A stretch of 64,000 nucleotides of DNA from Scyliorhinus canicula (Eukaryota), in the NCBI RefSeq assembly GCF_902713615.1, contig NC_052176.1, positions 1,550,001 to 1,614,000 on the forward strand, written 5' to 3'. The notes beneath the pieces were generated by a model. The model ran no database searches and was not told the origin of the DNA. It worked only from the letters and a program-made list of their open reading frames with translations. Position numbers and translations under genes: made by a program. Positions 4,700 through 61,550 of this stretch are shown in pieces (within the stretch, counting starts at the first letter, position 1; every line of letters begins with the position of its first letter).

Positions 4700-5560
4700 G
4701 TATTGAGGAAGCAGGCAGCTGCAGAAGGATTTGGACAGGCTCGGAGAGTGGGCAAAGAAGTGGCAGGTGGAATACAATGTGCGAAAAGTGTGAGGTTATG
4801 CACTTTGGAAGGATTAATGGAGGCATAGACTATTTTCAAAATGGGGAAATGCCTCGGTATCAGAAGCACAAAGGGACTTGGGAGTCCTTGTTCACGATTC
4901 TCTTAAGGCTAACGTGCAGGTTCAGTCGGCAGTTAGGAAGGCAAATGCAATGTTAGCATTCATGTCAAGAGGGCTAGAATACACAGGCAGGGAAGTACTT
5001 CTGAGGCTGTATAAGGCTCTGGTCAGACCCCATTTGGAGTATTGTGAGCAGTTTTGGGCCCTGTCTCTAAGGAAGAATGTGCTGGGGCCTTGGATAGGGT
5101 CCAGAGGAGTTTCACAAGAATGATCCCCGGAATGAAGGGCTTGTCGTATGAGGAACGGTTGAGGACTCTGGGTCTGTACTCATTGGAGTTCAAAGGATGA
5201 GGTGGGGGTCTTATTGAGGCCTGGATAGTGTGGAATGGAGAGGATTTTTCCACTTGTAGGAAAAACTAGAAATAGAGGACAGAATCTCAGACTGAAGGGA
5301 CGATCCTTTAAAACAGAGATGAGGAGGAATTCCTTCAGCCAGAGGGTGGTGAATCTGTGGAACTCTTTGCCGCAGAAGGCTGTGGAGGCCAAATCACGGA
5401 GTGTCTTTAAGAGAGAGATAGATAGGTTCTTGATCAATGAGGGGATCAGGGGTTATGGGGAGAAGGCAGGAGAATGGGGATGAGAAAATATCAGCCATGA
5501 TTGAATAGCGGAGCAGACTCGATGGGCCGAGTGGCCTAATTCTGCTCCTATGTCTTATGG
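4700..5560 (+). mobile_element. CR1-clade LINE 3' fragment
   Basis: RPHLEYCEQFW and FSQRVVNLWNSLP motifs; 3' tail. Confidence 0.9.
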
Positions 5561-8574: not shown

Positions 8575-9975
8575 AATATCCGATTCGGAACATTACAGCT
8601 CCAACAATGATCCTTGGGTAACCTCGGCCGATATTATAGCGGAGTCTCATAACCAGAGGTCATTAATGGAGGGGATGTCGGTGCTGGTGAGGGCGAGGGA
8701 TTTGTACCTGAAAGAGAGATTCACAGGTCTGGAAAAGCTGCGGGAGAGGGTGGAGCTGCCGAAGGGAAGCAAATTCAGATATCTACAAGTGAGGGTCTTT
8801 GCGCGGAAGGAATGGAGAGGATTTCCCAAGCGGCCGGAGCACATCCTGCTGGAGCGATCACTGCTCCTGGATGTGGAGGGCAGGATTGGTGATATATATG
8901 GTTAGCTGGGGAAGCAAAGGTGGTGGGGATCAAGAATGGGGCGGGGGGGGGGGAGAAAGAGAAAAGAGCGATAGGGTGTGGAGTGAGGAGATGCCTAGTG
9001 TAAATTCAACCTCATCATAGATTTTACAGTGAAGAAGGAGGCCATTTGGCCCATCAAGTCTGCACCGGCCCTTGGAAAGAGCTCCCTACCTAAGCCCCAC
9101 ACCCCCATCCTATCCTCGTAACCCGGTAACCACACCCAACCTTTTTTGGACGCTAAGGGAAATTTAGCACATCTTTGGACTGTGGTAGGAAGGCGGAGCA
9201 CACGGAGGAAACCCACGCAGACACAGGGAGAACTTGCAGACTCCGCACAGGCAGCGACCCAAACCAGGAATCGAACCTGGGACCCTGGCGCTGTGAAGCC
9301 ATCGTGCTAACCACTGCGCTACCGTGCACGAGGATGAGCTGGATTCAATTTAAGGTGGTGCACGGGGTGCGAGGACCAGCGAATCATGTGCAGGTGCTCT
9401 CGGGCTGCGAGACGTTGGAAAGATACTGGTAGGCGGTATTGGGGACGCTATTGAAGATTGAGGGGGTAGAGGTTGGGCCGGGCCCCATGGTGGCGATCTT
9501 TGGAGTATCGGAAATGCTGGAGCTGATGGAGGGGAGGTGGGCCGATGTTGTGGCCTTCGCCTTTCCCATTGCCTGGCAAAGAATACTGTTGGATTGGCGG
9601 TCGGTGACGCCGCCGGGGGGTGGCAGCCTGGCTGGGTCGGTGACGCCGCCGGGGGGTGGCAGCCTGGCTGGGTCGGTGACGCCGCCGGGGGTTGGCCGCC
9701 TGGCTGGGTCGGTGACGCCGCCGGGGGCAGTTGCCTGGCTGGGTCGGTGACGCCGCCGGGGGTGGAGGCCTGGCCGGGTCGGTGACGCCGCCGGGGGTGG
9801 AGGCCTGGCTGGGTCGGTGACGCCGCCGGGGGTGGCAGCCTGGCTGGGGGATCTGGATGACATCCTTTGGCTGGAAGAGATCAAGTTCGAGTTGAAGGGA
9901 TCAGCAGAGGGCCTTGCGACACGGTGGGGACTGTTCATGACAATGTTTGAGGACTTGTTTGTCGCGGAGTGGAGT

Positions 9976-10012
<37 letters not shown>

Positions 10013-10142
10013 AAGAGGAGGGAGGGTAGAGGGTGAAAAGGTGGAAATCTGCACAAATTGCGAACTGTGGGATGTTGATAATGTTATGGATTTGTGTTTT
10101 TCTACTTTTGAATTTGTTTGGAATAAAATACGTTGAAAAAAA
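8575..10142 (+). mobile_element. Degenerate L1-clade LINE 3' part, interrupted by a SINE and a minisatellite
   Basis: FRYLQVR, IQFKVVH and VAIFGVSE...ILLDWRS motifs resemble the 52137-53249 ORF; A-rich tail near 10120-10142. Confidence 0.75.
9595..9850. repeat. 35-36-bp tandem repeat, about 7 copies, inside L1 ORF2
   Basis: Unit gggtcggtgacgccgccgggggtggcagcctggct. Confidence 0.9.
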
Positions 10143-10219
10143 GCTCGAGGCCACCAGTATAAGGTACTCAGTAATCAACTCAATGAGGAATTCAGGAGAA
10201 TCTTTCCTCCACTCTCCCC

Positions 10220-10790
10220 CGGGGACTGGGAAGAATGTGGAACCCGCTCCCACAGGGAGTAGGGGAAGAATGTGGGACTCGCTTCCACGGGGAGTGGGGC
10301 AGAATGTGGGACTCGCTTCCACGGGGAGTGGGGAGAATGTGGGACTGGCTACCACAGGGAGTGGGGCAGAATGTGGGATTCGCTCCCACGGGGAGTGGGG
10401 GAGAATGTGGGATTCGCTCCCACGGGGAGTGGGGAGAATGTGGTACTTGCTCCCACGGGGAGTGGGGAGAATGTGGGACTCGCCCCCACGGGGACTGGGG
10501 AGAATGTGGGATTCGCTCCCACAGGGAGTGGGGAGAATGTGGGACTCGCTCCCACAGGGAGTGGGGGAGAATGTGGGACTCGCTGCCACGGAGAGTGGGG
10601 AGAATGTGGGACTCGCTCCCACGGGGAGTGGGGAGAATGTGAGACTCGCCCCCACGGGGACTGGGGAGAATGTGGGATTCGCTCCCATGGGGAGTGGGGA
10701 GAATGTGGTACTTGCTCCCACAGGGAGTGGGGAGAATGTGGGACTCGCTCCCATGGGGAGTGGAGGAGAATGTGGGACTCGCTCTGCCGG
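10220..10790. repeat. 33-34-bp minisatellite, about 17 copies
   Basis: Unit ggggagaatgtgggactcgctcccacggggagt, with an internal hairpin gtggga/tcccac. Confidence 0.95.
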
Positions 10791-11555
10791 GGAGCGGAGG
10801 AGAAGATGGAGTTTGGTCTCGCGAGGCGTGGAGGAGATGAATTGTGTCGGTACATTTCAAGGGATTCTGGATAAGCATTTACGGGAACGAAGAATAGAGT
10901 GTTGTGGGGGGGGGGGGGGGGGGGGGGGGGTCTGATGACAGATTTAGACGAGGAATGACTGGAGGAGGCTGGTGAGCAGCACAAATACCAGCACGGACAG
11001 GATGGGCCGAGTGGCTGGCTTCTGTAACATGCCTCTTATGCAATTCAATCCGCCAAGATGGAGCTTGAACCCAGACTCGGGAATGTTAACGTTGTTCAGT
11101 TAGCGGAGCACCCCCATTCAAGTTAGAAAAAGTGTGGGTTCGAGTCTCCACTCCGACCAGAGGTCGTAACCTGTAGGTTAATCCACCAGTACAGCTCTCG
11201 GTCTTAAGCCCCGGGCGAGGAGGAGTGGGTTCTTCCAGGGAGGTGGCAGACGAGTGTGGGCGAGGACCAGCAAATCACATTCTGGGGTCCCAACTTCCTC
11301 CCACTGACTTCTCTGCCTACCTCGGCGGGGCCAGGAAAACGTCAAAGAGGCCTGTGGCATCGTTTATTGTATATAAAAGGAGCAGGGAGTTTTCGCGTCA
11401 AATTGGCAATCCTCCCTCAACTAACTGCCGGCATTAAAGACCCATTAGCTTGAGTTGATACAGCACCTTGCCACATCTCGAACAGATTAATCAGAGCACG
11501 TACTGACTGATACAGTGACGTTGTACAGATTGATTGCTACCCCCCCTCGACCTAC

Positions 11556-18366: not shown

Positions 18367-19149
18367 ACTGTCCAAGATTAAGCTTTTAAATGGTTAGCAT
18401 AGAGGTTACTGTGAAAATCCCCTCGTCGCTGTATTCCGGCGCCTGTTCGGGTACACGAGGGAGAATTCAGAATGTCCAATTCACCCAACAAGCACGTCTT
18501 TCGGGACTTGTGGGAGGAAACCGGAGCGCCCGGAGGAAACCCACGCAGACACGGGGGGGGGGAGAACGTGCAGACTCCGCGCAGACAGTGACCCAAGCCC
18601 GGGAATCGAACCCGGGTCCCTCGAGCGGTGAAGCCACAGAGCTAACCACTGTGCCGCCCAATTTTAATTTTGAAGAGCTAAACCTTGACACGGAGTCACC
18701 CAAACTCACTTTTAAAGAGATGGCATGAGTGATGTCAAAAAGCCAGACAGGCCCATAGCAGTTCCCCGTCCCCGAATATTGAAGATTAAAGAAGGATTGT
18801 AGACAACACAAATGAATTTCTATATATTGTACTTTTGACAGCCCACTGACAACTAAAGAGGAAAGTACACATTTGATTTTGAAGGTTATTGACCATTGGG
18901 ACAGATTGGAAGAGTCTGGGGGGGGGGGGGGGGGGGGGGGATCACACACCCCTCTTACCCAATCCCTAGGGGACCCCCCCCCCCCCCCCCATCCCTGGGG
19001 GGGCACACCGTATTATTGTCCATCGGGAGGTTTTATTATCCAGAGAGAATGAGGGTTGAAGAGGGGGGTCCAATGGAGGGGAGATTCAGGGGGGGTTGCT
19101 GAGTGATGGTTCAGGGACTTTGAAGAGGGTCCAAAGGAGGGGATAATTC

Positions 19150-22135
19150 AGGAGTGGGGATTGTGGTGGAAGAATGGATTCCATGTGGGTGGGGGGGGGG
19201 GGCGCGGCGGGATTCCGGGAATGGGAGGGGAGGTTGTGAGGGAGGAAATCTAGGGGCATGGTTGGGAGGGGGGGGGGGGGGGGGGGAGAAAATCGGGGTG
19301 GGGGGAACTGGGGGGTTTCGGGGGAGTTTGGGAGGGGGGAGATCAGCGGGGGATGAGGGACCTGGGGGGGGGTTCGGGAGGGGGGATTTGCAGGAGGGGG
19401 ATCTGGGTGGGAGGGGGGATTTGCGGGGGGAGGGAATCTGGGGGGGAAGGGGAGGGAATCAGGGGGGAAGGGGAGGGAATCTGCGGGGGGAAATCTGGGG
19501 GGAATCTGGTTGGGGGGATCTGGGAGGGGGGAGGGATCTGGAAAGGGGGGGAGGGATCTGGAAAGGGGGGGAGGAATCTGGAAAGGGGGGGGAGGGATCT
19601 GGAAAGGGGGGAAGGGATCTGGAAAGGGGGGAAGGGATCTGGAAAGGGGGGAAGGGATCTGGAAAGGGGGGGGAGGGATCTGGAAAGGGGGGGAGGGATC
19701 TGGAAAGGGGGAGGGATCTGGAAAGGGGGAGGGATCTGGAAAGGGGGGAGGGATCTGGAAAGGGGGGAGGGATCTGGAAGGGGGGAGGGATCTGGAAGGG
19801 GGGGGGAGGGATCTGGAAGGGGGGGAGGGATCTGGAAGGGGGAGGGAGCTGGAAGGGGGGGAGGGATCTGGAAGGGGGGAGGGATCTGGAAGGGGGGGGG
19901 GAGGGATCTGGAAGGGGGGGGAGGGATCTGGAAGGGAGGAGGGATCTGGAAGGGGGGGAGGGATCTGGAAGGGGGTGGAGGGATCTGGAAAGGAGGGGAA
20001 AGATCTGGAAAGGGGGGGAGGGATCTGGAAAGGGGGGGAGGGATCTGGAAAGGGGGGGAGGGATCTGGAAAGGGGGGGGAGGGATCTGGAAAGGGGGGGA
20101 GGGATCTGGAATGGGGGGGGAGGGATCTGGAAAGGTGGGGAGGGATCTGGAAAGGGGGGGGGAGGGATCTGGAAAGGGGGGGAGGGATCTGGAAAGGGGG
20201 GAGGGATCTGGAAAGGGGGGGAGGGATCTGGAAAGGGGGGGAGGGATCTGGAAAGGGGGGAGGGATCTGGAAAGGGGGGGAGGGATCTGGAAAGGGGGGG
20301 GAGGGATCTGGAAGGGGGGGAGGGATCTGGAAGGGGGGGGAGGGATCTGGAAGGGGGGGAGGGATCTGGAAGGGGGGGGGAGGGATCTGGAAGGGGGAGG
20401 GATCTGGAAGGGGGGAGGGATCTGGAAGGGGAGGGAAGGGATCTGGAAGGGGGGAGGGAAGGGATCTGGAAGGGGGGAGGGAAGGGATCTGGAAGGGGGG
20501 AGGGAAGGGATCTGGAAGGGGGGAAGGGATCTGGAAGGAGGGGGGAAGGGATCTGGAAGGGGGGGGAAGGGATCTGGAAGGGGGGGGAAGGGATCTGGAA
20601 GGGGGGGGAAGGGATCTGGAAGGGGGGGAAGGGATCTGGAAGGGGGGGAGGGATCTGGAACGGGGGGCGGAATCTGGTGGGAGGGAGGAATATGGTGGGG
20701 GGGAGAAGAGAATCTGGTGGGGGGAAATCTGGGGGTGGGGAGAAGAGACGCTGGTGGGGGGAAATCTGGGGGGGGGGTGAGGGGAATCTGGTGGAGGTGG
20801 TAAATCGGGTGGGGGGACTCTGTGGTGGTGGGGGGGGGAATCTGGTGGTGGTGGGGGGGGAATCTGGTGAGAGGAGGGTATCTGATGGGGGGGAATCTGG
20901 TGGGAGGGGGGATCTGGTGGGGAAGGTAAATCTGGTGATGGTGGTAATCTGGTGGTGGGGAATCTGGTGGTGGGGAATCTGGCGGTGGGGGTGGGAATCT
21001 GGTGGTGGGGGGAATCTGGTGGTGGTGGTGGGAATCTGGTGGTGGGGGTGGGAATCTGGTGGGGGGGAATCTGGTGGTGGGGGGGAATCTGGTGGTAGGG
21101 GTGGGAATCTGGTGGTAGGGGTGGGAATCTGGTGGTAGGGGTGGGAATCTGGTGGGGGGATCTGGTGGTGGGGGGGAGAATCTGGTGGTGGTGGGAATCT
21201 GGTGAGGGGGGTCTGGTGGGGGAGAGAATCTGGTGAGGGGGGTCTGGTGGGATGGGGGGGAGAGAATCTGGTGGTGGGGGAATCTGGTGGGGGGGTCTGG
21301 TGGGATGGGGGGAAGAGAATCTGGTGGGGGAGGGTAAATCTGGTGGCGGTGGAAATCTGGTGGGTGAGTGGGAATCTGGTGGTGGTGGGAATCTGGTGGG
21401 TGGGTGGGAATCTGGTGGGTGGGAGGGAATCTGGTGGCGGTGGTGGGAATCTGGTGGTGGTGGTGGGAATCTGGTGGGTGGGGGGCTGGTTTGGGGAGTG
21501 AATCTGGTGGGTTTGGGGAGTGAATCTGGTGGGTGTGTGGAATCTGGTGGGGGGAGAGATCTGGTAGGTGGGTGGGAGATCTGGTAAGTGGGTGGGGAAT
21601 CTGGTGGTGGGGGGAGATCTGGTGATGTGATCTGGTGATGGGGGGAATCTGGTTGGGGGTCTAGTGTGGGGGATCTAGTGGTGGGGAATCTGGTGGTGGG
21701 GAGATCTGGTGATGGGGGGAATCTGGTTGGGGGTCTAGTGTGGGGGATCTGGTGGTGGTGGAATCTGGTGGGGGGGGGGGATCTGGTGGTGGTGGGGGAT
21801 CTGGTGGTGGGGGGAATCTGGTGGTGGGGGAATCTGGTGGGGGGAATCTGGTGATGGGGGATCTGGTGGTGGTGGGGGATCTGGTGGTGGTGGGGGATCT
21901 GGTGGTGGGGGGATCTGGTGGTGGTGGGGGGATCTGGTGGTGGGGGGATCTGGTGGTGGTGGTGGGGGGGATCTGGTGGTGGTGGGGGGATCTGGTGGTG
22001 GGGGGGGATCTGGTGGTGGTGGGGGATCTGGTGGTGGGGGGATCTGGTGGTGGGGGGGGGATCTGGTGGTGGTGGGGGATCTGGTGGTGGGGGGGATCTG
22101 GTGGTGGGGGGGGATCTGGTGGTGGGGGGTGTGAT
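19150..22135. repeat. G-rich compound satellite: (GGGATCTGGAAAGGGGGGGA)n then (GGAATCTGGTGGTGGG)n
   Basis: Direct reading; ATCTGG anchor throughout; extreme G skew on the plus strand. Confidence 0.95.
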
Positions 22136-24874: not shown

Positions 24875-25660
24875 GATTGGATTGGGTTTGTTTATTGTCA
24901 CATGTACCGAGGTACAGTGAAAATTATTTTTCTGCGAGCAGCTCAAACAGATCATTAAGTACATTAAAAGAAAAGGGAATAAAAGAAAATACATAATAGG
25001 GCAACACAAGGTACAACAATGTAACTACATGGACACCGGCATAGGGTGAAGCATGCAGGGGTGTAGTACTAATCAGGTCAGTCCATAAAAGGGTCATTTA
25101 GGAGTCTGGTAACAGCGGGGAAGAAGCTAATTTTCAGTCAGTCCGTGCGTGTTCTCAGACTTTCGTATCTCCTGCCCGATGGAAGAAGTTGCAAGAGTGA
25201 GTAAGCCGGGTGGGAGGGGGCTTTGATTTTGCTGCCCGCTTTCCCCAGGCAGCGGGAGGTGTAGACGGAGTCAATGGATGGGAGGCAGGTTCGTCTGATG
25301 GACTGGGCTGTGTTCACGACTCTCTGAAGTTCCTTGCGGTCCTGGGCCGAGCAGTTGCCATACCAGGCTGTGATGCAGGCAGATAGGATGCTTTCTATGG
25401 CGCATCTGTAAACGTTGGCAAGAGTCAATGTGGACATGCCGAATTTCCTTAGTTTCCTGAGGATGCATAGGCGCCGTTGGGTTTTCTTGGTGGTAGCGCC
25501 GGCGTGGGTGGACCAGGACAGATTGTTGGTGATGTGCACCCCTAGGAATTTGAATCTGTCAACCATCACCACCTGGGCCCCGTTGATGCTGACGGGGGTG
25601 GGGGTATACAGTACTTTGCTTCCTGAAGTCAATTGCTACTGTTTAGTTTTGCTGGAGGGA
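24875..25660 (-). mobile_element. Rex1/Babar-type LINE 3' fragment
   Basis: FKFLGVHITNNLSWS...LRKLRKFGMS...ESILSACITAWYGNCS...LLPSGRRY. Confidence 0.85.
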
Positions 25661-25949
25661 GAGATTGAGGAAATGAAGAAAATGAAAATCGCTTATTGTC
25701 ACAAGTAGGCTTCAAATGAAGTTACTGTGAAAAGCCCCTAGTCGCCACATTCTGGCACCTGTTCGGGGAGGCTGGTACGGTAGGCTTGTTATCGCTGTAC
25801 CACTCCATGTACCGTTCCTTTAAGGTGTGTTTTTCAAGAGCGGAGTTTGGAAATGCTCGTGTAGAAGCCAGAGTTCTGGACTTTGTTCCATTCTGGTTAA
25901 ATTATCATTATTATGTGGACTCCTTCAATGGATGGACTACAGATCCCAG

Positions 25950-26102
25950 AAGGCCCCGCGCGCGGAGGTCACCGCCCCCCGCTCTGATTGGCCCATCCTC
26001 TTGGGCGGGACCCGATGCCCCGGTAGTGCTTCGGGGGAGGTGCAAAATCACAACATTTTCCAACGGGCTGGACGGAGCGGCAGCTCGGCGTGAGAAGAAG
26101 CG
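25950..26102 (+). promoter_or_regulatory. MACROD1 CpG-island promoter / 5' UTR
   Basis: CpG-rich with reverse CCAAT (GATTGG near 25986), GGGCGG and an AGGTCA half-site, directly upstream of exon 1. Confidence 0.6.
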
Positions 26103-26457
26103 ATGGAGAGAATGGCATCCGGGCTCGGGCGGAGCCGCCTGCTGCGCTGGGGCGGGCGGGCCTTGGCGCAGGCGCGGAGGGCGTCGGCCTGGGGCGCGCG
26201 GCCGGGCCAACGGTCGGCCGGCGTTGGCGGCGGGCCCGCGCCTGCGCGCTGGCTCGTTGCCGGCCGAGGCGGCGGCCCCGCGCCTGCGCGCTGGCTCGTT
26301 GCCGGCCGAGGCGGCGGCCCCGCGCCTGCGCGCTGGCTGGCTGCCGGCGGGACACGCCCCCCGCACTCGGTGCCGACGAGCGAGGCGGCCACCGGCGCCA
26401 TGAGCCCCGAGGACTTTCACTCCGCTCGCCCCAGCACCGACTGGAAAGTGGCCAAAA
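26103..26457 (+). CDS. MACROD1: MACROD1 exon 1 (Arg-rich mitochondrial presequence-like N-terminus to ...STDWKVAK)
   Basis: MERMASGLGRSRLLRWGGRALAQARR...STDWKVAK then A|GTAAGT (phase 1). Resembles human MACROD1 STDWKEAK. Confidence 0.85.
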
Positions 26458-27812
26458 GTAAGTGTCACTGCAGCCCCCACACACATCAAACACTTCAGTC
26501 TACACCTATTGCTGAAAAAAAAAAGCTCAGACTTCGCCAGGGTGGTAAACCTCCAGCGTTGGGACAAACACAAGAATGCCAAATTTCCGAGGGAGGGATG
26601 AGGATCGGTTCCCTGATCGGTCGGCGTGTCATCTCTGGTTGGCTGAGGCGCTGCCGGTGGGCTGGTTTAGCTCAGTGTGCTAGACTGCTGGTTCGTGAGG
26701 CAGAACAAGGCCAGCAGCGCGGGTTCAATTCCCGTACCGGCCTCCCCGAATAGGCGCCGGAATGTGGTGACTAGGGGATTTTCACAGTAACTTCATATTT
26801 CTGACAATAAAAGATTGCTTTTATTATTATTATCTGGCGACGAGGGTGGGATTTACCGGCTGCTCGCGCCGGCGGGAAATCCCGGTCCCACCGGCATTGA
26901 GGGGCGCAGCTGACGGCGGGGTGGGAGATCCCGCTGTCCACCCGTCCCATCCTGCCTGAAAACACGAACTGGGGTGCTCGTTCAATCCTGTCCCTGTCGT
27001 CAGGTTTTTTTTAATTACCAAAAAAAAGAGGCAATGCTTGGTCCTGTTCTTTCTGTTTGCGCAGGACAAGCCCATATATGCGTGACTGGACGCAGTTTCT
27101 CAGAGGCGAAAGTGAGCCACGTTGCGAGCCCGACTGCAATGTTACATTGTTAACGTAATCCTTGGCGCACTCTGGGGTTGTTCAGCAAGTGCTGCCCGAT
27201 TGCAGATTCACCTTCAACACCCGACGTCGCGTTCGGAGTTTTCCTTGCCGCCGCGTTTTCATCTTGCCCGCACCGTCGTCCTCACAGAGTCACGGCATTG
27301 TTATGGCGTAGAAGGGTCCATTCGGCCCATCGCGTTCGCCAAATGAATTTCGTGCTGTTCCCCTGCCTTCACCCCCCCCCCCGTCTGCACATTGTTTCTG
27401 TTCAAATAATCATCTAGCACTCTTTTGAATGCATCGATTGAACTGCTTCTCTTCAAATAATCGTCTAACGCACTCTTGAACGCATTTGACGCAGTGCATT
27501 CCACACCCAACCTACTCGCTGCGTATGAAGGTTTTTTTCTCATGTCACATTTTCTTCTTTTGCAAACCTGTGCCCTCTTCGGGAACAGTTTCTCCCCATC
27601 TACTCTGTTCCACCCAAACCCCCCTCCCCCACATAATTTTGAACATCTGTATCAAATCTCCCCTCAGCCCTCTTCTCCCCAAGGAGATCAGTCCCAGGCT
27701 CTCCAATCTATCCTCGTAACTGAAGTTGCTCATCCCTGGAAACGTTCTCGTTAACCTCGCCGGTTGACCAGGTCTGCTCCTGGGAAAGGCCCAACTTTCA
27801 ATTTTATCCCTC

Positions 27813-33744: not shown

Positions 33745-33846
33745 AGCACCTGGAGAAAATTGACCGCCCAGAAAGACGCAGATACTACAGAGCCGGACAA
33801 TATGTCACCCTGGATGAGATTCCAACGTGGAAAGACCTGGCTGAAG
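33745..33846 (+). CDS. MACROD1: MACROD1 exon 2 (102 nt)
   Basis: Polypyrimidine tract and aag|AG; (K)HLEKIDRPERRRYYRAGQYVTLDEIPTWKDLAE; G|GTGAGT. The IPTWK motif is shared with MACROD1. Confidence 0.9.
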
Positions 33847-37070: not shown

Positions 37071-40000
37071 ATAACTTTATAAAGTTTTCAGAAGGCGCTG
37101 AAAGATCGATTTGTTCCAGGAGTGATAATATAAGAAATAGGGCTTGGTTAGTTTATAAACAAACTTTATTAAAGCAAAAGTAAACATTATTTAAACATTC
37201 CAACTTCAACCCTAACGATAACTGATTACATGTAGTTTCTGAACCGTAACACATTAGTTTCCATTAAACATTACTTTAAATAAACACGTAACTCTCATGC
37301 CATCTACGCAGGCAAAGGCAATACTTGCATTTACGAAGCAATTTTTCTTCTGTGAGGGACGTTCTTTCAGAACCCTTTTTGCAAAGCCTGCCTCGTTGGC
37401 ACTTTCATCACTTCTCTCGGTCGATTTCTGAAGCCTTTCCCCCTATCTGTTCAAAACAGCATTCCTTCTCATGCTCTATCTCTGAGCCCTGCCCAGCCCC
37501 TCGAACAAAGGTTCTCTGCTGGGGTGTCCAGACCTGAACCCATCATCGTTATCTTGGCTGTTTGATAGCCCTTTTATACAAAAGAACAGAGCCATCTTAT
37601 TGATATGCAACTGACCTCCCGTTGACCAACAAAGAGGCCATAAGACTCTAATGGGCTAATAGCTGGTCAGAAGGGAATGTCCCGAAGAACAATGGATCTG
37701 GGGGCATCCTGTATATTTCCACTCACGTGTCTGACTGGGATAATCCAGGTATGCGCGTATCCCTCTGATTCCATTTTAGCAGTATTTTCCCTCTGTCGGT
37801 TTCATCCCGAAATTGCCCGCTACATTGGGGTCTCATTCCTGGACCCGATTTCCTAATATCTCCCTCGTGTAACAACATTGTTAAGCAATTTTGCCTTATT
37901 AATGGTTATGGACAGGTAATGGTTATTGGCCCCTGTGGGGAAATTATAGGGAGTTTGTGTCTCTGTCGAGTTGGATGAAAAATAAACTTGCTGAAGGTAA
38001 AAGACAAACTACTGTATTATTCCTCCAGCATATCTTTGTGAGGGCCACGAAGAATCCAGCACGGGTTGGTGGAGTCAAACAGAAAGTAACTTTATTTACG
38101 ACCATATGTACACAATGCCAGTGGTTCACCACTGATTCCCTTTCCAGCCGGTACCACACTGGCCAGCTCTATGTATAGAGCTGCACTGTTAATGATTGCT
38201 CCGCGCCCCCCTCCCCCCCTCATTGGGGGAGCTCATATTCCCCAAGGAGCATGGGGTAACCAATTGTCCCCAGCCAGTAGGATCCGGGCAGGTGATAACG
38301 CACGCACTAACACGTTAATGTTAGCAGAGGAGGCCAGAGCTGAGCATAGGCACCAGCACCGACTCGTCGGGCCGAATGGCCCGTTTCGGTGCCTTATAAC
38401 CTACCTGACCCAATGTACAATTCCCTTCAGCGTCCCGGAATCCGGTCAACAAAATAAACACACAGGAAATGTTGCAAATGCTCAGCAGGTCGAGAGGTAC
38501 AGAGTTAACGCTGCCGATGTCCTTCCTGGAAGGAGTTGAGAAAGTGGACAGCCTGTAAGCCAGTCCGGTCATGGAAGGAATATGTGGTGGGGGGGGGGGG
38601 GGGGGGGGGGGGAGGGGGGGGGGGGCTGGGCGATCCGCGGGCACGGGGGGGGGTCTTGATCAGGGGCTGGGGGCAATGTGGGGGGGTGGTTCAGGGTGCG
38701 CGAGTCGGCCAACGAGGGGGCACTATTTCACGGGCCGGGTCCGTGAGCGGCCTCCGCCACGTAGCGCGGCGTGGCTGCGCGGCAACGGCGTCGCTGGCCG
38801 GGCCCAGTATTTATTGCCCCATCCCCTAATCGCCCCCTTGAGAAGGTGGCGGCATCGTAGTGGTTAGCACTATGGCTTCACAGCTCCAGGGTCCCAGGTT
38901 CGATTCCCGGCTTGGGTCCCTGTCTGTGCAGAGTCTGCACGTTCTCCCCTCCGTGCCTGCGTGGGTTCCCTCCGGGTGCTCCGGTTTCCTCCCACAAAGT
39001 TGTGCAGGTTAGGTGGATTGGCCATGGTAAATTGCCTTTAGGTTAGATGGGGTTGCTGGGTTACCGGCAAGGTACCAAGGTACCGGCAACTCGGGCAGTT
39101 GCCCGGGGCGCCATGTGCTCGCCATGCGCCGAAGTTCAGATTGCCCGGGGCGCCAGCAACCCTAGGGCCGGCGCTGGTTACAGGGATAGGGTGGACGGAC
39201 ATTTTACGGCCTTGTCGAGCCAACGCTGCTACCGCCCGAGCCTGCAAAATGTTGCAATCGTTTTCTGGAAACTAGCTCACGTCACCTTCCCCCGCCACGC
39301 GCGCGCGCGGCAACGGACCGGGGCGTAACGGCAGCTCGAGCCGGGGTGCTCTACGCTGCTGCCCTGCGAGCCCCCAGCCAAACGGGGAATCTTTGGCCGC
39401 TTTACCCCATTTTCTCTGGCGTAAAACACCACCGATCCCACCCACGCCAGCGTGGGGGACATAGCCTCAGAATCGGAGACTCCAGCCCCACCCAGAGCCA
39501 GGATCGAACCTGGGACCTCGGCACCGCGAGGCAGCAGCGCTAACCACTGCGCCACCGTGCTGCCCCAATCAGAGTCCATCTCAGTGTTACAAAATGCAGG
39601 GGTTTGGGAAGAAATCTACGTAAATTCTTGCAAAACATTATCTAGTCGTGACAGCTCAGCCGGAAATCAATCTCAATTCTCTCAAATACATGTTATAGAC
39701 AGGAGGGACTACTGAATAATAAATGCATTTATTAATCTCTACAGCGACATTACACCTACAAGAGATTGAGAGCTGCAAGGGCCAAAATTTATCGATTCAT
39801 GTATTGTTCAGAAAACAACTTGGTCCGTCAGTACGCACAACGCTGTATACTTTACAGCGATAGGCATTAGCCAGAGGCACTTTGCAAAGATTGTCTTTCT
39901 CAGCATGTGGGAATGCGATGAAAAGTGGAATGCGATTGGAAAATGAGACGCCGGACCCTGACACGCATTTGTTGCCGTAGGTTAATCACACGACATGGCT

Positions 40001-40154
40001 CCTATTGATTTAGAGCTCTTCCAGTTTGCCATCGGCATGCTCAGTCGCCCGGAGCCGTTTTGGGGGAAGGTGATGTGAGCTCATTTCCTGAAAACGATCG
40101 CAACATTTTGTCTTGGTCGACAGGCTCGGGCAGTAGCAGCGTTGGCTCGACAAG

Positions 40155-41070: not shown

Positions 41071-41945
41071 AAAAGTAAAATAAAAAAATGATTCGCCTCG
41101 TAACATAAGCACTATTATAATAACAGTAATCTTTACTGTCACAAGTAGGCTCACATTAACACTGCAATGAAGTTACTGTGAGAATCCCCTCGTCGCCACA
41201 TTCCGGCTCCTGTTCGGGTACACGGAGGGAGAATTCAGAATGTCCAATTCACCCAACACGCACGTCTTTCGGGACTTGTGGGAGGAAACCGGAGCACCCG
41301 GAGGGAAAACCATGGAGATGTGGGGGAGAACGTGCAGACTCCGCACAGACAGTGACCCCAAGCCTGGAATCGAACCGGTTCCCTGGCGCTGTGAAGCAAC
41401 AGTGCTAACCACCGTGCTCCTTCATCTATGCCTTTATCATTGAGTAAACGCGGCGACTTGGAAATTAAGCCTATTTTGTTTCATTTTCTGGCCCTATTAT
41501 TCCAACTCCAGTTAGACAAAAGAAAAAGCCAGACAAACGCACCTAATTTTGAACAAACAAAATGTTTTCGAGTATCCAATTAATTGCTTCCAATGAAGGG
41601 GCAATTTAGCGTTGGCCAATCCACCCGCCCTGCACATCTTTTGGGTTGTGGGGGGGGGGGCGAAACCCACGCAGACACGGGGAGAATGTGCAAACTCCAC
41701 ACGGACAGCGACCCAGAGCCTGGATTGAACCCGGCACCTCGGCGCCGTGAGGCAGCAGTGCTAACCATTAGGCCACCGTGCTGCCCACATCGCCTCATTT
41801 AATACGGAGCAAAAATCAATTTTTTGGTTTGTGTAGAAAAGTAAACGCTCTGTGTCAATACATTGCACAGTTATTCCAGAGTACCGTCATTCCGTTTAGC
41901 AAAACAATGAGTAAATGCCCACAAAACCTTTCGAAGACCTGGAGC

Positions 41946-42521
41946 TTAAGGATTTTTCCTCTGTTTGAGCGCAAACAGCTTTTTCACTGTGGTTCGTTCA
42001 TGTTCCCGGCCGGCACTCGGCGTGTCCTTTCCTGGGTTTTGAGGTTCTTTCGCGGCGATTAACCCTCTCTTGTAACATTCCAGTTCCTCTTGCGCAGCTA
42101 GCAGCTGAGCCTTGAGCTTGTTGCGCTCCTGTAACACCTCCCTCAGCTCCTGCAGCGTGAAGCGCGGCCGGTCGGGGTCGTTAACGTCCGCCGCCGTTTT
42201 GTCCGGACCGGTGGCCTGCTCCGCCGGCGAGCAGCTCCTCGCCTCCCGGAGTTCCCCCTGCAGCCTTTCCGTCTCCGCCCTCAGCACCTCGCGTTCGAGC
42301 CTCAGCGCCTCCGCCGCCAGGCTCTGCTTGTCCACCAAGGCCTCGAATATCTCCAGCACCCTGATTATCTTGTACTGCAGCTCCGCCACGGTGCGGCCCT
42401 CCGCCGCGCCGCTGAGCTTGAATAAATCCCGGCCGATGATGTAGGACATGTCGTAGACATCTTCCGCCGTCAGGTCGAACGGGTCTTTGTCGAATGCCGA
42501 CGCGGGGCTCGGCTCCTCCAT
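41946..42521 (-). CDS. RILPL2: RILP-like protein 2-like, intronless full-length ORF (191 aa), nested antisense in MACROD1 intron 2
   Basis: RH1-like DPFDLTAEDVYDMSYIIGRDL...LQYKIIRVLEIFEALV, RH2 DPDRPRFTLQELREVLQERNKLKAQLL and C-terminal TTVKKLF, all in one uninterrupted ORF. Confidence 0.9.
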   Translation of the reverse strand: MEEPSPASAFDKDPFDLTAEDVYDMSYIIGRDLFKLSGAAEGRTVAELQYKIIRVLEIFEALVDKQSLAAEALRLEREVLRAETERLQGELREARSCSPAEQATGPDKTAADVNDPDRPRFTLQELREVLQERNKLKAQLLAAQEELECYKRGLIAAKEPQNPGKDTPSAGREHERTTVKKLFALKQRKNP

Positions 42522-43192
42522 TGACCTCCCTCGCAGTGCCCCCGACCAGCTCCCCGACCAGGCTAAAGCTGCAAACGAGAGCAGCTGAACATGTGGAGTG
42601 CAGGAAGTGCTGTTTGACAGGCGGCTGGCTTCAGGAAAGCCTCAGACAACCGATAAGGCAGCCTTCTGTTCCACTACCAGCTTCAGGCAGCTTCCCACAC
42701 TTCCTCTTCGTGTGCTCAGCTTTTTCACATGACAGGAAGCAGGGAGGCTGCTTGGCTGACGGTGTTGAACAACCAATCCAGGGTTTTGTTTGGCAATCCT
42801 CGGTTGCTTAACGACGGCCACAGAGAAGCGGAACCTGTGCTTGTTCTTTCTCCCTGCTTCCAGAATCGCTTCCCTTTTTAAAATGTTTATTGAGGCAAAT
42901 AGTAAGGGCTCAACATACATGGACACAAAGGGGGCACAAGAAAACAGCAGCTCAATCCAATCGTTTATTTTTTTTAAATATAAATTTAGAGTACCCCCTG
43001 GTTTAGCACACTGGGCTAAATCGCTGGCTTTGAAAGCAGACCAAGGCAGGCCAGCAGCACGGTTCAATTCCCGTACCGGCCTCCCCAAACAGGCGCCGGA
43101 ATGTGGCGACTAGGGGCTTTTCACAGTAACTTCATTTGAAGCCTGCTTGAAATGAAATGAAAATGAAAATCGCTTATTGTCACGAGTTGCAA

Positions 43193-43381: not shown

Positions 43382-43559
43382 GATACTCAGCAGTGTGAGC
43401 AGCCAGGGGCCTGTGAGGTGCACCACAGGGGTGTGAGGAGCACCACAGACTGCAGCAATGGGGGTCTGAGCCAGGCTACCCACAATTCCACGGGGGACAC
43501 CCCGAGTTCACGGACTTGACATCCGGCCCAAGCAGCCATCCCTTGACCAGAATGCCAAT

Positions 43560-44171
43560 GGGCCCGATTCTCTGATCGTGGGACAGGGTGTCCGCGCCGT
43601 TGTGAACGCTGTCGCGTTTCACGACAGCGCGAAACGGGCGCGGGCACGAGCGATTCTGGCCCCCACAGGAGGCCAGCACGGCGCTGGAGCGGTTCACGCC
43701 ACTCCAGCCTCACTTCCTGCCGCGCACTGGGGGCGGCACCGATCCGCGCACGCGCGGTGGCTTTACGGAACGAGCCAGCCCCGACGCGGGGGTTCCGGGG
43801 CCGGACGCACAACAAAGTAGGCCCAGAGGGGTGGGGGGGGGGGGGGGGGGAGGCCGGCCCGCAGATCGGAGGGCCCCGAACGCGGGCCAGACCCCATCGG
43901 AGGCCTCCCCCAACCCCCGACCCTTCGCGCAGAGCTCCCGCCGCAGGTGTGGATGGTGCCGGCGGGACTCTGCTTTTTCCGTGCGTCCGCTCAGCCCATC
44001 CTGGCCGGAGAATCGGCGGTCCGGCCTCGTACAGCGGCCCGCGGCCGGCGCCGTGCCAAACGCGCCGGCGCCGATTCTCCGCACCTCGGAGAATCGGGCA
44101 CCGGCGTCGGGGAGGCGTGGCGCGGTTGCGGCGATTCTCCGGCCCGGCGCGGGGCTGGGAGAATCGCGCCC
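43560..44171. mobile_element. GC-rich MITE, PIF/Harbinger-like
   Basis: TIRs gggcccgattctc / gagaatcgcgccc; 3-bp TSD aat; internal hairpins. Confidence 0.7.
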
Positions 44172-44519
44172 AATGCCGGAGCCGCTCCGCCAACTATGGC
44201 CTCTGACCTTTGGCCTTGCTGTCCACCCATCCCTCGTCTCACAATCTCCGTAACTGCGCGATCGTTACCAATTGATGGACGTCTCTTCCCAGCGACGCAC
44301 AACATCCTCCTCGCAGAGTAATTCCCGATGCATTCATTCAGCCTACCTGTCGCTTAATAGCATTGGAAATATTTGGCGAATTGATTTCTAAACTTTGTCA
44401 GCCTTCAGCCTGAGTCCGATCAGTCGAAAAATAGACAAACCTTGAAACGCGCAGGTTTGGGAATGCCGAGTAGCTGACTGGTGTCTATTTTGATTGACAG
44501 CTTTCTCCAAAATATTAGG

Positions 44520-47549: not shown

Positions 47550-48550
47550 TTGGATTTTGTTAATGGTCACGTGTAGCGAGGTACAGTGAAAAGTATTTTT
47601 CTGCAAGCAGCTCAACAGATCATTTAGTACATGGGAAGAAAAGGGAATAAAGGAAAATACATAATAGGGCAACGCAAGGTACACAATGTAACTACATAAG
47701 CACCGGCATCGGGTGAAGCATACAGGGGTGTAGTGTTAATCAGGTCAGTCCATAAGAGGGTCGTTTAGGAGTCTGGTAACAGTGGGGAAGAAGCTGTTTT
47801 TGAGTCTGTCTGTGCGTCTTCTCAGACTTCTGTATCTCCTGCCCGATGGAAGAAGTTGGAAGAGTGAGTAAGCGGATGGGAGGGGTCTTTGATTATGCTG
47901 CCCGCTTTCCCCAGGCAGCGGGAGGTGTAGATGGAGTCACTGGACGGGAGGCGGGTTCGTCTGATCGACTGGGCTGTGTTCACGACTCTCTGAAGTTTCT
48001 TGCGGTCCTGGGCCGAGCAGTTGCCATACCAGGCTGTGATGCAGCCCGATAGGATGCTTTCTATGGTGCATCTGCAAAAGTTGGTGAGAGTTAATGTGGA
48101 CATGCCGAATTGCCTTAGTTTCCTGAGGAAGTATAGGCGCTGTTGTGCTTTCTTGGTGGTAGCGTCGACGTGAGTGGACCAGGACAGATTTTTGGTGACG
48201 TGCACCCCTAGGAATTTGAAGCTGTTAACCATCTCCACCTGGGCCCCGTTGATGCTGACAGGGGTGTGTACAGTACTTTGCTTCTTGAAGTCAATGAAAA
48301 ATGAAAATCGCTTATTGTCACGAGTAGGCTTCAATGAAGTTACTGTGAAAAGCCCCTAGTCGCCACATTCCGGCACCTGTCCGGGGAGGCTGGTACGGGA
48401 ATCGAACCGTGCTGCTGGCCTGCTTGGTCTGCTTTAAAAGCCAGCGATTTAGCTCAGTGAGCTAAACCAGCCCCTTGACCAATGACCAGCTCTTTAGCTT
48501 TGCTGGCATTGAGGGATAGATTGTTGTCGCTGCACCACTCCACTAGCTTC
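47550..48550 (-). mobile_element. Rex1/Babar-type LINE 3' fragment with a nested short SINE (about 48294-48473)
   Basis: FKFLGVHVTKNLSWS, KKAQQRLYFLRKL motifs. Confidence 0.85.
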
Positions 48551-56617: not shown

Positions 56618-56734
56618 GAGAAAGGTTTAAGCAGCCGTCATCGCACTACGCGAGGGACGACATTATGAATCAAAAGCTTTCGCTCTTGCAGGACGACATC
56701 ACCAAGCTGGAAGTCGACGCGGTTGTCAACGCAG
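56618..56734 (+). CDS. MACROD1: MACROD1 exon 3 (117 nt, start of macrodomain); gene continues beyond the window
   Basis: ttgcag|GA; (G)ERFKQPSSHYARDDIMNQKLSLLQDDITKLEVDAVVNA; G|GTTGGT. DITKLEVDAxVNA is the macrodomain signature. Confidence 0.93.
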
Positions 56735-60894: not shown

Positions 60895-61550
60895 TTGGAT
60901 TAGATTTGTTTATTGTCATGTGTACCGAGGTACAGTGAAAAGTACAGGCAGATCATTAAGTACATGAAAAGAAAAGGAAATAAAAGAAAATACATAATAG
61001 AGCAACACGAGGTTTACAATGTAAATACATAGACACCGGCATCGGATGAAGCATACAGGGGTGTAGTGTTAATCAGGTCAATCCATAAGAGGACTCGTTT
61101 AAGAGTCTGGTAACAGTGGGGAAGAAGCTGTTTTTGAGTCAGTCCGTGCGTGTTCTCAGACTTCTGTATCTCCCGCCCGATGGAAGAAGTTGGAAGAGTG
61201 AGTAAGCCGGGTGGGAGGGATCCTTGATTATGCTGCCCGCTTTCCCCAGGCAGCGGGAGGTGTAGATGGAGTCAATGGATGGGAGGCAGGTTCGTGTGAC
61301 AGACTGGGCTGTGTTCACGACTCTCTGAAGTTTCTTGCGGTCCTGGGCCGAGCAGTTGCCCTACCAGGCTGTGATGCAGCCCAATAGGCTGCTTTCTATG
61401 GTGCATCTGTAAAAGTTGGTACGGGTTAATGTGGACATGCCGAATTTCCTTAGTTTCCTGAGGAAGTATAAGCGCTCTTGTGCTTTCTTGGTGGTAGCGT
61501 CGAAGTGGGTGGACCAGGACAGATTTTTGGTGATGTGTACCCCGAGGAAT
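60895..61550 (-). mobile_element. Rex1/Babar-type LINE 3' fragment
   Basis: Same ORF end and 3' UTR as 47550-48290. Confidence 0.85.

Follow-up and report, generated by a model that had tools for sequence, protein, structure and literature searches.

The stretch analysed here, referred to as the window, is 64 kb (64,000 nucleotides) of the genome of the catshark Scyliorhinus canicula. The listing of its open reading frames holds one on the minus strand, at 41946..42521, that runs without interruption from an ATG start through 191 codons to a stop and constitutes a complete coding sequence (CDS). The translation carries RPRFTLQELR and, close to the C-terminus, KKLF. Pfam recognises two domains above the curated cut-offs, RH1 (PF09744) at residues 21-88 with an E-value of 4e-10 and RILP/RH2 (PF11461) at residues 122-169 with an E-value of 5.6e-19; on the feature map we place RH1 at about residues 21-88 and RH2 at about residues 110-153. 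When the catshark protein was searched against the sequences of the PDB the matches were RILPL2 chains only, with RH1 matching the myosin-Va-binding domain of 4kp3_C (RILPL2; E 5e-17) and RH2 matching the phospho-Rab-binding domain of 7lwb_D (E 6e-19) and 6rir_D (E 5e-14). In the alignment of RH2 to 6rir/7lwb, the X-cap RPRF and the lysine of NKLK are the same in catshark and human, and R130, R132, F133 and K149 of the human protein correspond to R118, R120, F121 and K137 of the catshark one, so that all phospho-Rab contact residues are kept. In human RILPL2, R130, R132 and K149 are required for the binding of phospho-Rab8a (Waschbüsch et al., PMC7139218). A protein tree with RILPL1 sequences as outgroups, from which RILP sequences were left out, separates the RILPL2 sequences, including those of the kind described here, from RILPL1 at 100/100. 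The exact catshark protein is on record in GCA_902713615.2, and its closest match, from S. torazame, is 93% identical. The gene is thus RILPL2 by sequence and, by position and structure, a retro-paralogue.

The host gene is MACROD1, which lies on the plus strand. The matched part of its coding exon 1 (26379..26477) was found by tblastn with exon 1 of the sawfish Pristis (E 7e-5) and falls inside a CpG island identified by a CpG scan at 25801-26600. Coding exon 2 (about 33745..33846) was located by tblastn from the Pristis locus, by its match to residues 15-44 of human MACROD1 (2x47) and by its splice sites, and coding exon 3, where the macro domain starts (about 56618..56734), by tblastn from the Callorhinchus locus, by its match to 2x47 residues 51-83 (E 6e-7) and again by splice sites; the ends of both are accurate to within a few bases. 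Exon 1 of Pristis MACROD1 stops just ahead of the residues encoded by exon 2. As exons 2 and 3 on the plus strand flank the minus-strand reading frame, the latter lies antisense within coding intron 2, which is 22.8 kb long. The gene annotation of the catshark agrees, giving a 576-bp range on the opposite strand within a gene for a 288-aa Macro-domain protein. A sequence-only reading of this DNA had proposed an intact 191-residue RILPL2 frame nested antisense in MACROD1 intron 2, and both parts of that proposal are borne out, the first by the reading-frame listing, the Pfam RH1 and RILP domains and the RILPL2-only structure matches, and the second by the coding exons found on either side. The same reading had called the gene intronless, which holds for the coding sequence and probably not for the transcript, where a short conserved intron in the 5′UTR is likely.

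For the organisation of the canonical gene we turned to two bony vertebrates. In sturgeon (L006) the gene order is RILPL1, an RRM gene (SNRNP35), RILPL2 and a SET gene (KMT5A), and RILPL2 occupies 3.3 kb with four coding exons and three CDS introns. In turtle (L007) RILPL2 likewise sits downstream of the RRM gene (SNRNP35), and tblastn recovered three coding exons with a gap at residues 116-161 that would fit a fourth, in keeping with the same structure. The sturgeon SNRNP35 (L006:7529-8356) takes a range of 828 bp for a 275-aa product, which indicates a single-exon CDS, and the RRM gene is seen also at L007:1-682. Among the cartilaginous fishes, Heterodontus francisci has a canonical RILPL2 of 17.7 kb, with RILPL1 (an RH1+RILP protein of 394 aa) on one side and a gene for a SET protein of 347 aa on the other, as well as a second copy of 576 bp nested within a Macro gene. 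The catshark copy lies outside the RILPL1-SNRNP35-RILPL2-KMT5A block seen in sturgeon, Heterodontus and turtle. The three canonical intron sites map to its residues ~101-103, ~149-151 and 182 (~42213-42219, ~42069-42075 and 41976 in the window), and its reading frame continues across all of them. A copy that has lost all CDS introns and occupies a new locus, while the multi-exon parent survives elsewhere, bears the standard signature of retroposition. Alignment of the 3′ flanks revealed no recognisable poly(A) remnant or target-site duplication, and in S. canicula a SINE abuts the 3′ end; the loss of such traces is expected at an age of more than 400 million years and is given little weight here.

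The position is shared widely. In S. canicula, S. torazame, Heterodontus and Pristis, a CDS in a single range (567-576 bp across species) is nested within a called Macro gene and antisense to it. In the chimaera Callorhinchus the CDS of 567 bp is not within a called Macro gene; its distance to the homologue of MACROD1 exon 3 is 2.5 kb, and the two are oriented relative to each other as in the other species. The blocks upstream of the gene and the splice signals described below are common to all nested copies, including that of Callorhinchus. As the position is common to elasmobranchs and Callorhinchus, the insertion predates the split between chimaeras and elasmobranchs.

Selection on the nested gene was assessed by comparing copies between species. 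The reading frame is intact in 15 species at 187-192 residues, with two gene models adding N-terminal extensions. Pairwise dN/dS values are between 0.09 and 0.34, and between 0.09 and 0.25 when S. canicula is compared to other species; the comparison is unsaturated only between the sawfish and a ray contig, where dN is 0.072, dS 0.41 and their ratio 0.18. The catshark CDS has a GC content of 0.61, a GC3 of 0.78 and a CpG observed/expected ratio of 1.07, compared to a GC content of 0.52 and a CpG ratio of 0.61 for the whole window, and its GC3 stands above that of Pristis (0.37), Rhincodon (0.43) and Callorhinchus (0.59). The sequence-only reading had noted the high GC3 and CpG content and had suggested an old retrocopy under purifying selection. 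The compositional remark is correct, and the suggestion is supported by the missing canonical introns, by the presence of both genes in Heterodontus, by the common insertion site and by dN/dS ratios that are far from 1 in a gene that related species keep intact. The candidate explanation of a processed pseudogene was rejected on conservation, given the intact frames in 15 species, the dN/dS ratios and the placement of differences outside the domains. We therefore regard the locus, with good confidence, as a functional RILPL2 retrogene and not a pseudogene, derived from a spliced mRNA that was reverse-transcribed and inserted antisense in MACROD1 intron 2 no later than the ancestor of living cartilaginous fishes.

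Upstream of the start codon, a short segment at 42522..42568 on the minus strand would be the 5′ leader of the coding exon, as it lies downstream of a conserved acceptor (a pyrimidine tract followed by CAG) in a five-species alignment, and the whale shark (Rhincodon) gene model P0006 splices at the equivalent site. Beyond it is a putative 5′UTR intron of 109 nt (42569..42677, minus strand) with GT at 42677-42676 and AG at 42570-42569. The donor and acceptor are common to the aligned nested copies of shark, ray and chimaera, and the Rhincodon gene model has a 107-nt intron at the equivalent 5′UTR site, so we infer splicing of this intron in S. canicula. In the ray, contig L003 keeps the stretch unspliced. 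The next block (42678..42839, minus strand) is conserved in all nested copies, with the blastn match to Rhincodon reaching 42839, and is probably a proximal promoter and/or a non-coding first exon. Within it lie an ETS-like AGGAAGT at about 42697-42706, an E-box GTCATGTGA (GTCAYGTGA) at 42726-42734, GTCAGCCAA (a GTCAATCAA-like box) at 42752-42760 and an inverted CCAAT at 42773-42779. In all, about 300 bp 5′ of the ATG are conserved among catshark, whale shark, sawfish and chimaera, the GT...AG pair included.

Part of this arrangement is also seen at the canonical gene of sturgeon, where the GTCAATCAA-like box, the E-box and the ETS-like motif lie 170-226 bp ahead of the ATG with their order and spacing unchanged. 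This is the only such cluster beyond the nested copies in the 395 kb scanned, with 0.01 expected from shuffles, for a three-motif cluster that was defined after the sturgeon alignment had been inspected. The strict cluster is absent upstream of turtle RILPL2, where only an inverted CCAAT and an exact AGGAAGT are present, and an nhmmer profile of the four nested upstream regions found no match in the sturgeon canonical locus or in the Rhincodon RILPL1 locus. The comparison is suggestive only of a retrocopy that carried parental 5′UTR or proximal promoter sequence with it. At the positions aligned with the nested 5′UTR intron sturgeon has no GT/AG, and for this reason the intron looks like a later gain.

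A CpG island at 43400-44400 (GC up to 0.75, CpG observed/expected 0.86-1.27) lies 0.9-1.9 kb upstream on the strand of the retrogene. It showed no similarity to the remaining window or to the Rhincodon, Pristis and Callorhinchus loci, and could be an alternative promoter of the retrogene, an intronic promoter of MACROD1, or unrelated to either.

At the other end of the gene, the segment 41780..41945 on the minus strand would be the 3′UTR, with an ATTAAA at 41803-41798 on that strand, and about 170-190 nt past the stop are conserved among elasmobranch nested copies. A tRNA-derived SINE adjoins the ATTAAA signal from about 41795 downward, and copies of such SINEs flank the nested gene at 41580-41800, 41170-41440 and other places. 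Some 1.9-2.3 kb downstream of the retrogene, 39628-39742 and 39839-40088 match whale shark L001:5311-5425 and 4935-5185 in collinear order at about 70% identity. These two blocks are non-coding, having stops in every frame and indels that would shift a reading frame, and were not found in the Pristis or Callorhinchus loci; they may represent a shark-specific conserved regulatory element.

Of the sequence words of the CDS, fractions of 0.74-0.93 are present in 18 small assemblies of 46-240 million letters each, which come from at least seven studies and whose runs are only tentatively taken to be RNA. For words of the longer segment 41700-43000 the fractions are 0.43-0.56 in 18 runs (49-269 million letters), of the same tentative kind and partly the same ones. 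That the CDS is represented far better than its flanks suggests expression of the nested gene, and the pattern fits a mature mRNA with short UTRs, not genomic DNA or unspliced pre-mRNA of the host. The ray contig L003 (952 bp) has transcript-like ends, one close to the conserved upstream block and the other about 30 nt beyond the position aligned with the poly(A) signal.

To what extent the multi-exon parent persists beside the retrogene can be followed in annotated proteins. When a search was seeded with the canonical Heterodontus protein, close canonical relatives came only from Pristiophorus and Heptranchias, and among annotated proteins only the nested type was listed for the two Scyliorhinus species, Mustelus, Carcharodon, Hemitrygon, Pristis and Callorhinchus. 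For Chiloscyllium, Rhincodon, Stegostoma and Narcine there are nested-type matches alone, from the search with the catshark protein. Logan-derived proteins included none closer than about 60% identity to the canonical Heterodontus protein, and the Rhincodon RILPL1 gene with 10 kb downstream held no RILPL2 exon in an interval that is short and contains 5,010 N. Going by annotation, the parent survives beside RILPL1 in Heterodontus, Pristiophorus and Heptranchias; none turned up for catsharks, for lamniform and orectolobiform sharks, for rays or for the chimaera. The same annotation points to at least three independent losses of the parent. In S. canicula the annotated proteins indicate that the retrogene is probably the only RILPL2 and would have replaced its parent, and the nested gene probably serves as the RILPL2 of most cartilaginous fishes. 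The earlier reading had offered two options, a paralogue specific to chondrichthyans or a relocated replacement of the parent, and these turn out not to be exclusive: the copy is a paralogue where the parent survives and, as far as annotation goes, the apparent sole RILPL2 where no parent was found.

Several other histories could be proposed for the locus. The retrocopy might be older still, having originated in the jawed-vertebrate stem and later been lost in bony vertebrates. The elasmobranch nested copies form a clade (99/97), as do, separately, the three canonical shark proteins (100/99), and the maximum-likelihood tree places the nested clade with Callorhinchus outside canonical shark and bony-vertebrate RILPL2, as a stem origin would predict. 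However, the branches that matter have support of only 54-55, leaving the deeper part of the tree unsettled, and faster change after retroposition combined with the distant RILPL1 outgroup would pull the clade rootward. AU tests were applied to three groupings that were chosen with the free tree already in view; they do not reject nested copies with Callorhinchus (p 0.39) or a single chondrichthyan RILPL2 clade (p 0.386), and marginally reject Callorhinchus with the canonical copies (p 0.028). The motif cluster in common with the sturgeon canonical upstream region also agrees with a stem origin, but shows only that the 5′ region is old. In the protein tree, the 20 RILPL2 proteins taken from bony vertebrates form ray-finned and lobe-finned groups, away from the nested clade, and the named RILPL2 of sturgeon and turtle is the multi-exon gene downstream of SNRNP35. 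We consider a stem origin unlikely, and less so than the next two explanations. One of these would dispense with an mRNA intermediate, the RILPL2 locus having been duplicated or translocated as DNA with its promoter and having lost its three CDS introns afterwards. The likeness to the sturgeon upstream region in motif order and spacing, and the presence of an intron in the 5′UTR, would both follow from such an event. Precise loss of three CDS introns while a 5′UTR intron is kept is nevertheless far less parsimonious than retroposition of an mRNA with a long 5′UTR; the missing GT/AG at the aligned sturgeon sites makes the 5′UTR intron look newly acquired, and neither of the parental neighbours (SNRNP35, KMT5A) moved along, all of which makes a DNA-level copy improbable.

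The other explanation concerns S. canicula in particular, where the copy might be decaying or neutral, an expressed but functionless processed pseudogene with a frame kept by chance or by high GC content. The branch to Scyliorhinus is long (0.22), each of the 14 residues at which the two Scyliorhinus proteins differ changed on the branch of S. canicula, and with the GC3 of 0.78 goes a GARP/FYMINK ratio of 1.64, compared to 1.57 in S. torazame, 1.02 in Mustelus and about 0.65 in most other sharks; GC-rich sequence is, in addition, poor in stop codons. Against this, only 3 of the 14 differences lie in the 112 residues of RH1 and RH2 and 11 in the other 79 (Fisher p 0.004), and the RH2 region, residues 110-153, is identical in both Scyliorhinus species. 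All phospho-Rab contact residues are retained, the dN/dS against other species is low as given above, the upstream block is conserved with Rhincodon, the CDS is preferentially represented in many small assemblies, and the canonical-seeded protein search found no other RILPL2 for the species. Decay is thus the least probable of the explanations considered, with very little to recommend it. The shift in composition fits GC-biased substitution, the scaffold being small and GC-rich, and resembles the effect of GC-biased gene conversion on a gene that still functions. It explains why the frame caught the attention of the sequence-only reading and, given the conserved domains, is no sign of decay; some relaxation of constraint in S. 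canicula is possible.

The reading that we prefer is retroposition that had taken place, at the latest, by the time of the last ancestor shared by living cartilaginous fishes. A spliced RILPL2 mRNA would have been reverse-transcribed and the product placed antisense in MACROD1 intron 2, with the copy in place ever since. Expression would probably proceed from the compact promoter/5′UTR block directly upstream, with its short 5′UTR intron, which is conserved in all cartilaginous-fish copies, and the 5′ end of the parent may have contributed part of this block. Judging from homologues, the protein would bind the globular tail of myosin-Va through its N-terminal RH1, and the coiled-coil dimer of RH2 would bind LRRK2-phosphorylated Rab8/Rab10 through the arginine X-cap (R118, R120) and K137. 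A role for the adaptor in ciliary and membrane trafficking would follow. Binding of phospho-Rab8/10 and of the myosin-Va tail by the catshark protein is predicted here from the conserved residues. A fuller account can be put forward only tentatively, as something rather less than an even prospect: a single retroposition more than 400 million years ago yielded a copy that was self-sufficient through parental 5′ regulatory sequence and that sits antisense in MACROD1 intron 2 in all cartilaginous fishes, the parent having since been replaced at least three times (in chimaeras, in rays and in orectolobiform-lamniform-carcharhiniform sharks) and both genes having been kept in bullhead, saw and cow sharks.

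Compared to canonical vertebrate RILPL2 (human Q969X0; structures 4KP3, 6RIR/6SQ2 and 7LWB), the nested copy has the same layout of RH1, linker, RH2 and KKLF-type tail in about 190-210 residues, and about 96% of the catshark protein can be aligned with several mammalian RILPL2 proteins, at 53-55% identity. The genes themselves differ, the nested copy having no CDS introns where the canonical gene has three, and lying in MACROD1 intron 2 instead of the SNRNP35-KMT5A interval beside RILPL1. The nested copy is without the acidic N-terminal extension of amniote RILPL2, and its Scyliorhinus version is rich in Gly, Ala, Arg and Pro. The canonical chondrichthyan proteins (Heterodontus P0017, Pristiophorus P0016 and Heptranchias P0021) belong to the same family and coexist with nested copies in the same genomes; they come from a multi-exon gene (17.7 kb in Heterodontus) by RILPL1 and KMT5A and form the clade of their own noted above, with retrieved isoforms that differ at the C-terminus. 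Within Heterodontus, P0017 and the nested copy are 62% identical. Like orphan or replacement retrogenes and retrogenes nested in introns, the copy has lost its CDS introns, occupies a new locus, has been under long purifying selection, has gained a 5′UTR intron and has a parent that is apparently absent in several lineages. Unlike the usual examples of these kinds, it is very old, its position is common to all cartilaginous fishes, its parent still coexists with it in some lineages and, as the sturgeon comparison suggests without more, it may have brought parental 5′ regulatory sequence along.

Public chondrichthyan annotation already calls the nested gene at the MACROD1 site and names it “RILP-like protein 2”, and full-text searches found no literature linking RILPL2 with MACROD1, retrogenes or sharks. 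The earlier reading had cautioned that prior annotation at this position across gnathostomes would remove the novelty; the caution is justified in part, the gene being called and named at the site in chondrichthyans, whereas sturgeon and turtle carry the name RILPL2 on the multi-exon gene that follows SNRNP35. The gene call and name are thus already known, and the evolutionary history of the nested gene did not turn up in the literature searched. RILPL2 is a phospho-Rab effector in the LRRK2 pathway, which is of interest in Parkinson's disease and ciliogenesis, and most cartilaginous fishes may run the RILPL2 of this pathway from a retrogene. A correction of orthology also results, in that most annotations of sharks and rays give the name “RILP-like protein 2” to a gene that is not positionally orthologous to human RILPL2. 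The locus further provides a very old and well-dated case of a retrogene that has persisted within an intron of its host and has apparently taken the place of its parent repeatedly. It also lends itself to testing how retrocopies come by promoters and 5′UTR introns, whether through acquisition or inheritance. If the repeated replacement is true, the cartilaginous fishes would offer a natural series on how a retrogene supplants its parent. No new kind of gene or mechanism is revealed.

Some additional observations were made along the way. In the protein searches no cyclostome RILPL2 was among the matches listed, those from lamprey and hagfish being all RILPL1, and RILPL2 may have arisen as a tandem duplicate of RILPL1 in jawed vertebrates. 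The Callorhinchus scaffold MU249864.1 (L004) contains the retrogene twice, at 8944-10806 and 18703-20567, in a 1.86-kb inverted repeat whose arms are 99.68% identical. The two arms are separated by a gene with an ELM2 domain, and a gap of 25 N adjoins the first copy. A second real paralogue in Callorhinchus was considered and set aside because of this identity and the adjacent gap, and the repeat probably reflects either an artefact of assembly or an inverted duplication of very recent date. Within the catshark window, reverse-transcriptase-like fragments recur, for example at 25090-25596, 47873-48325 and 61097-61549, and a run of 37 G bases occupies 38589-38625.
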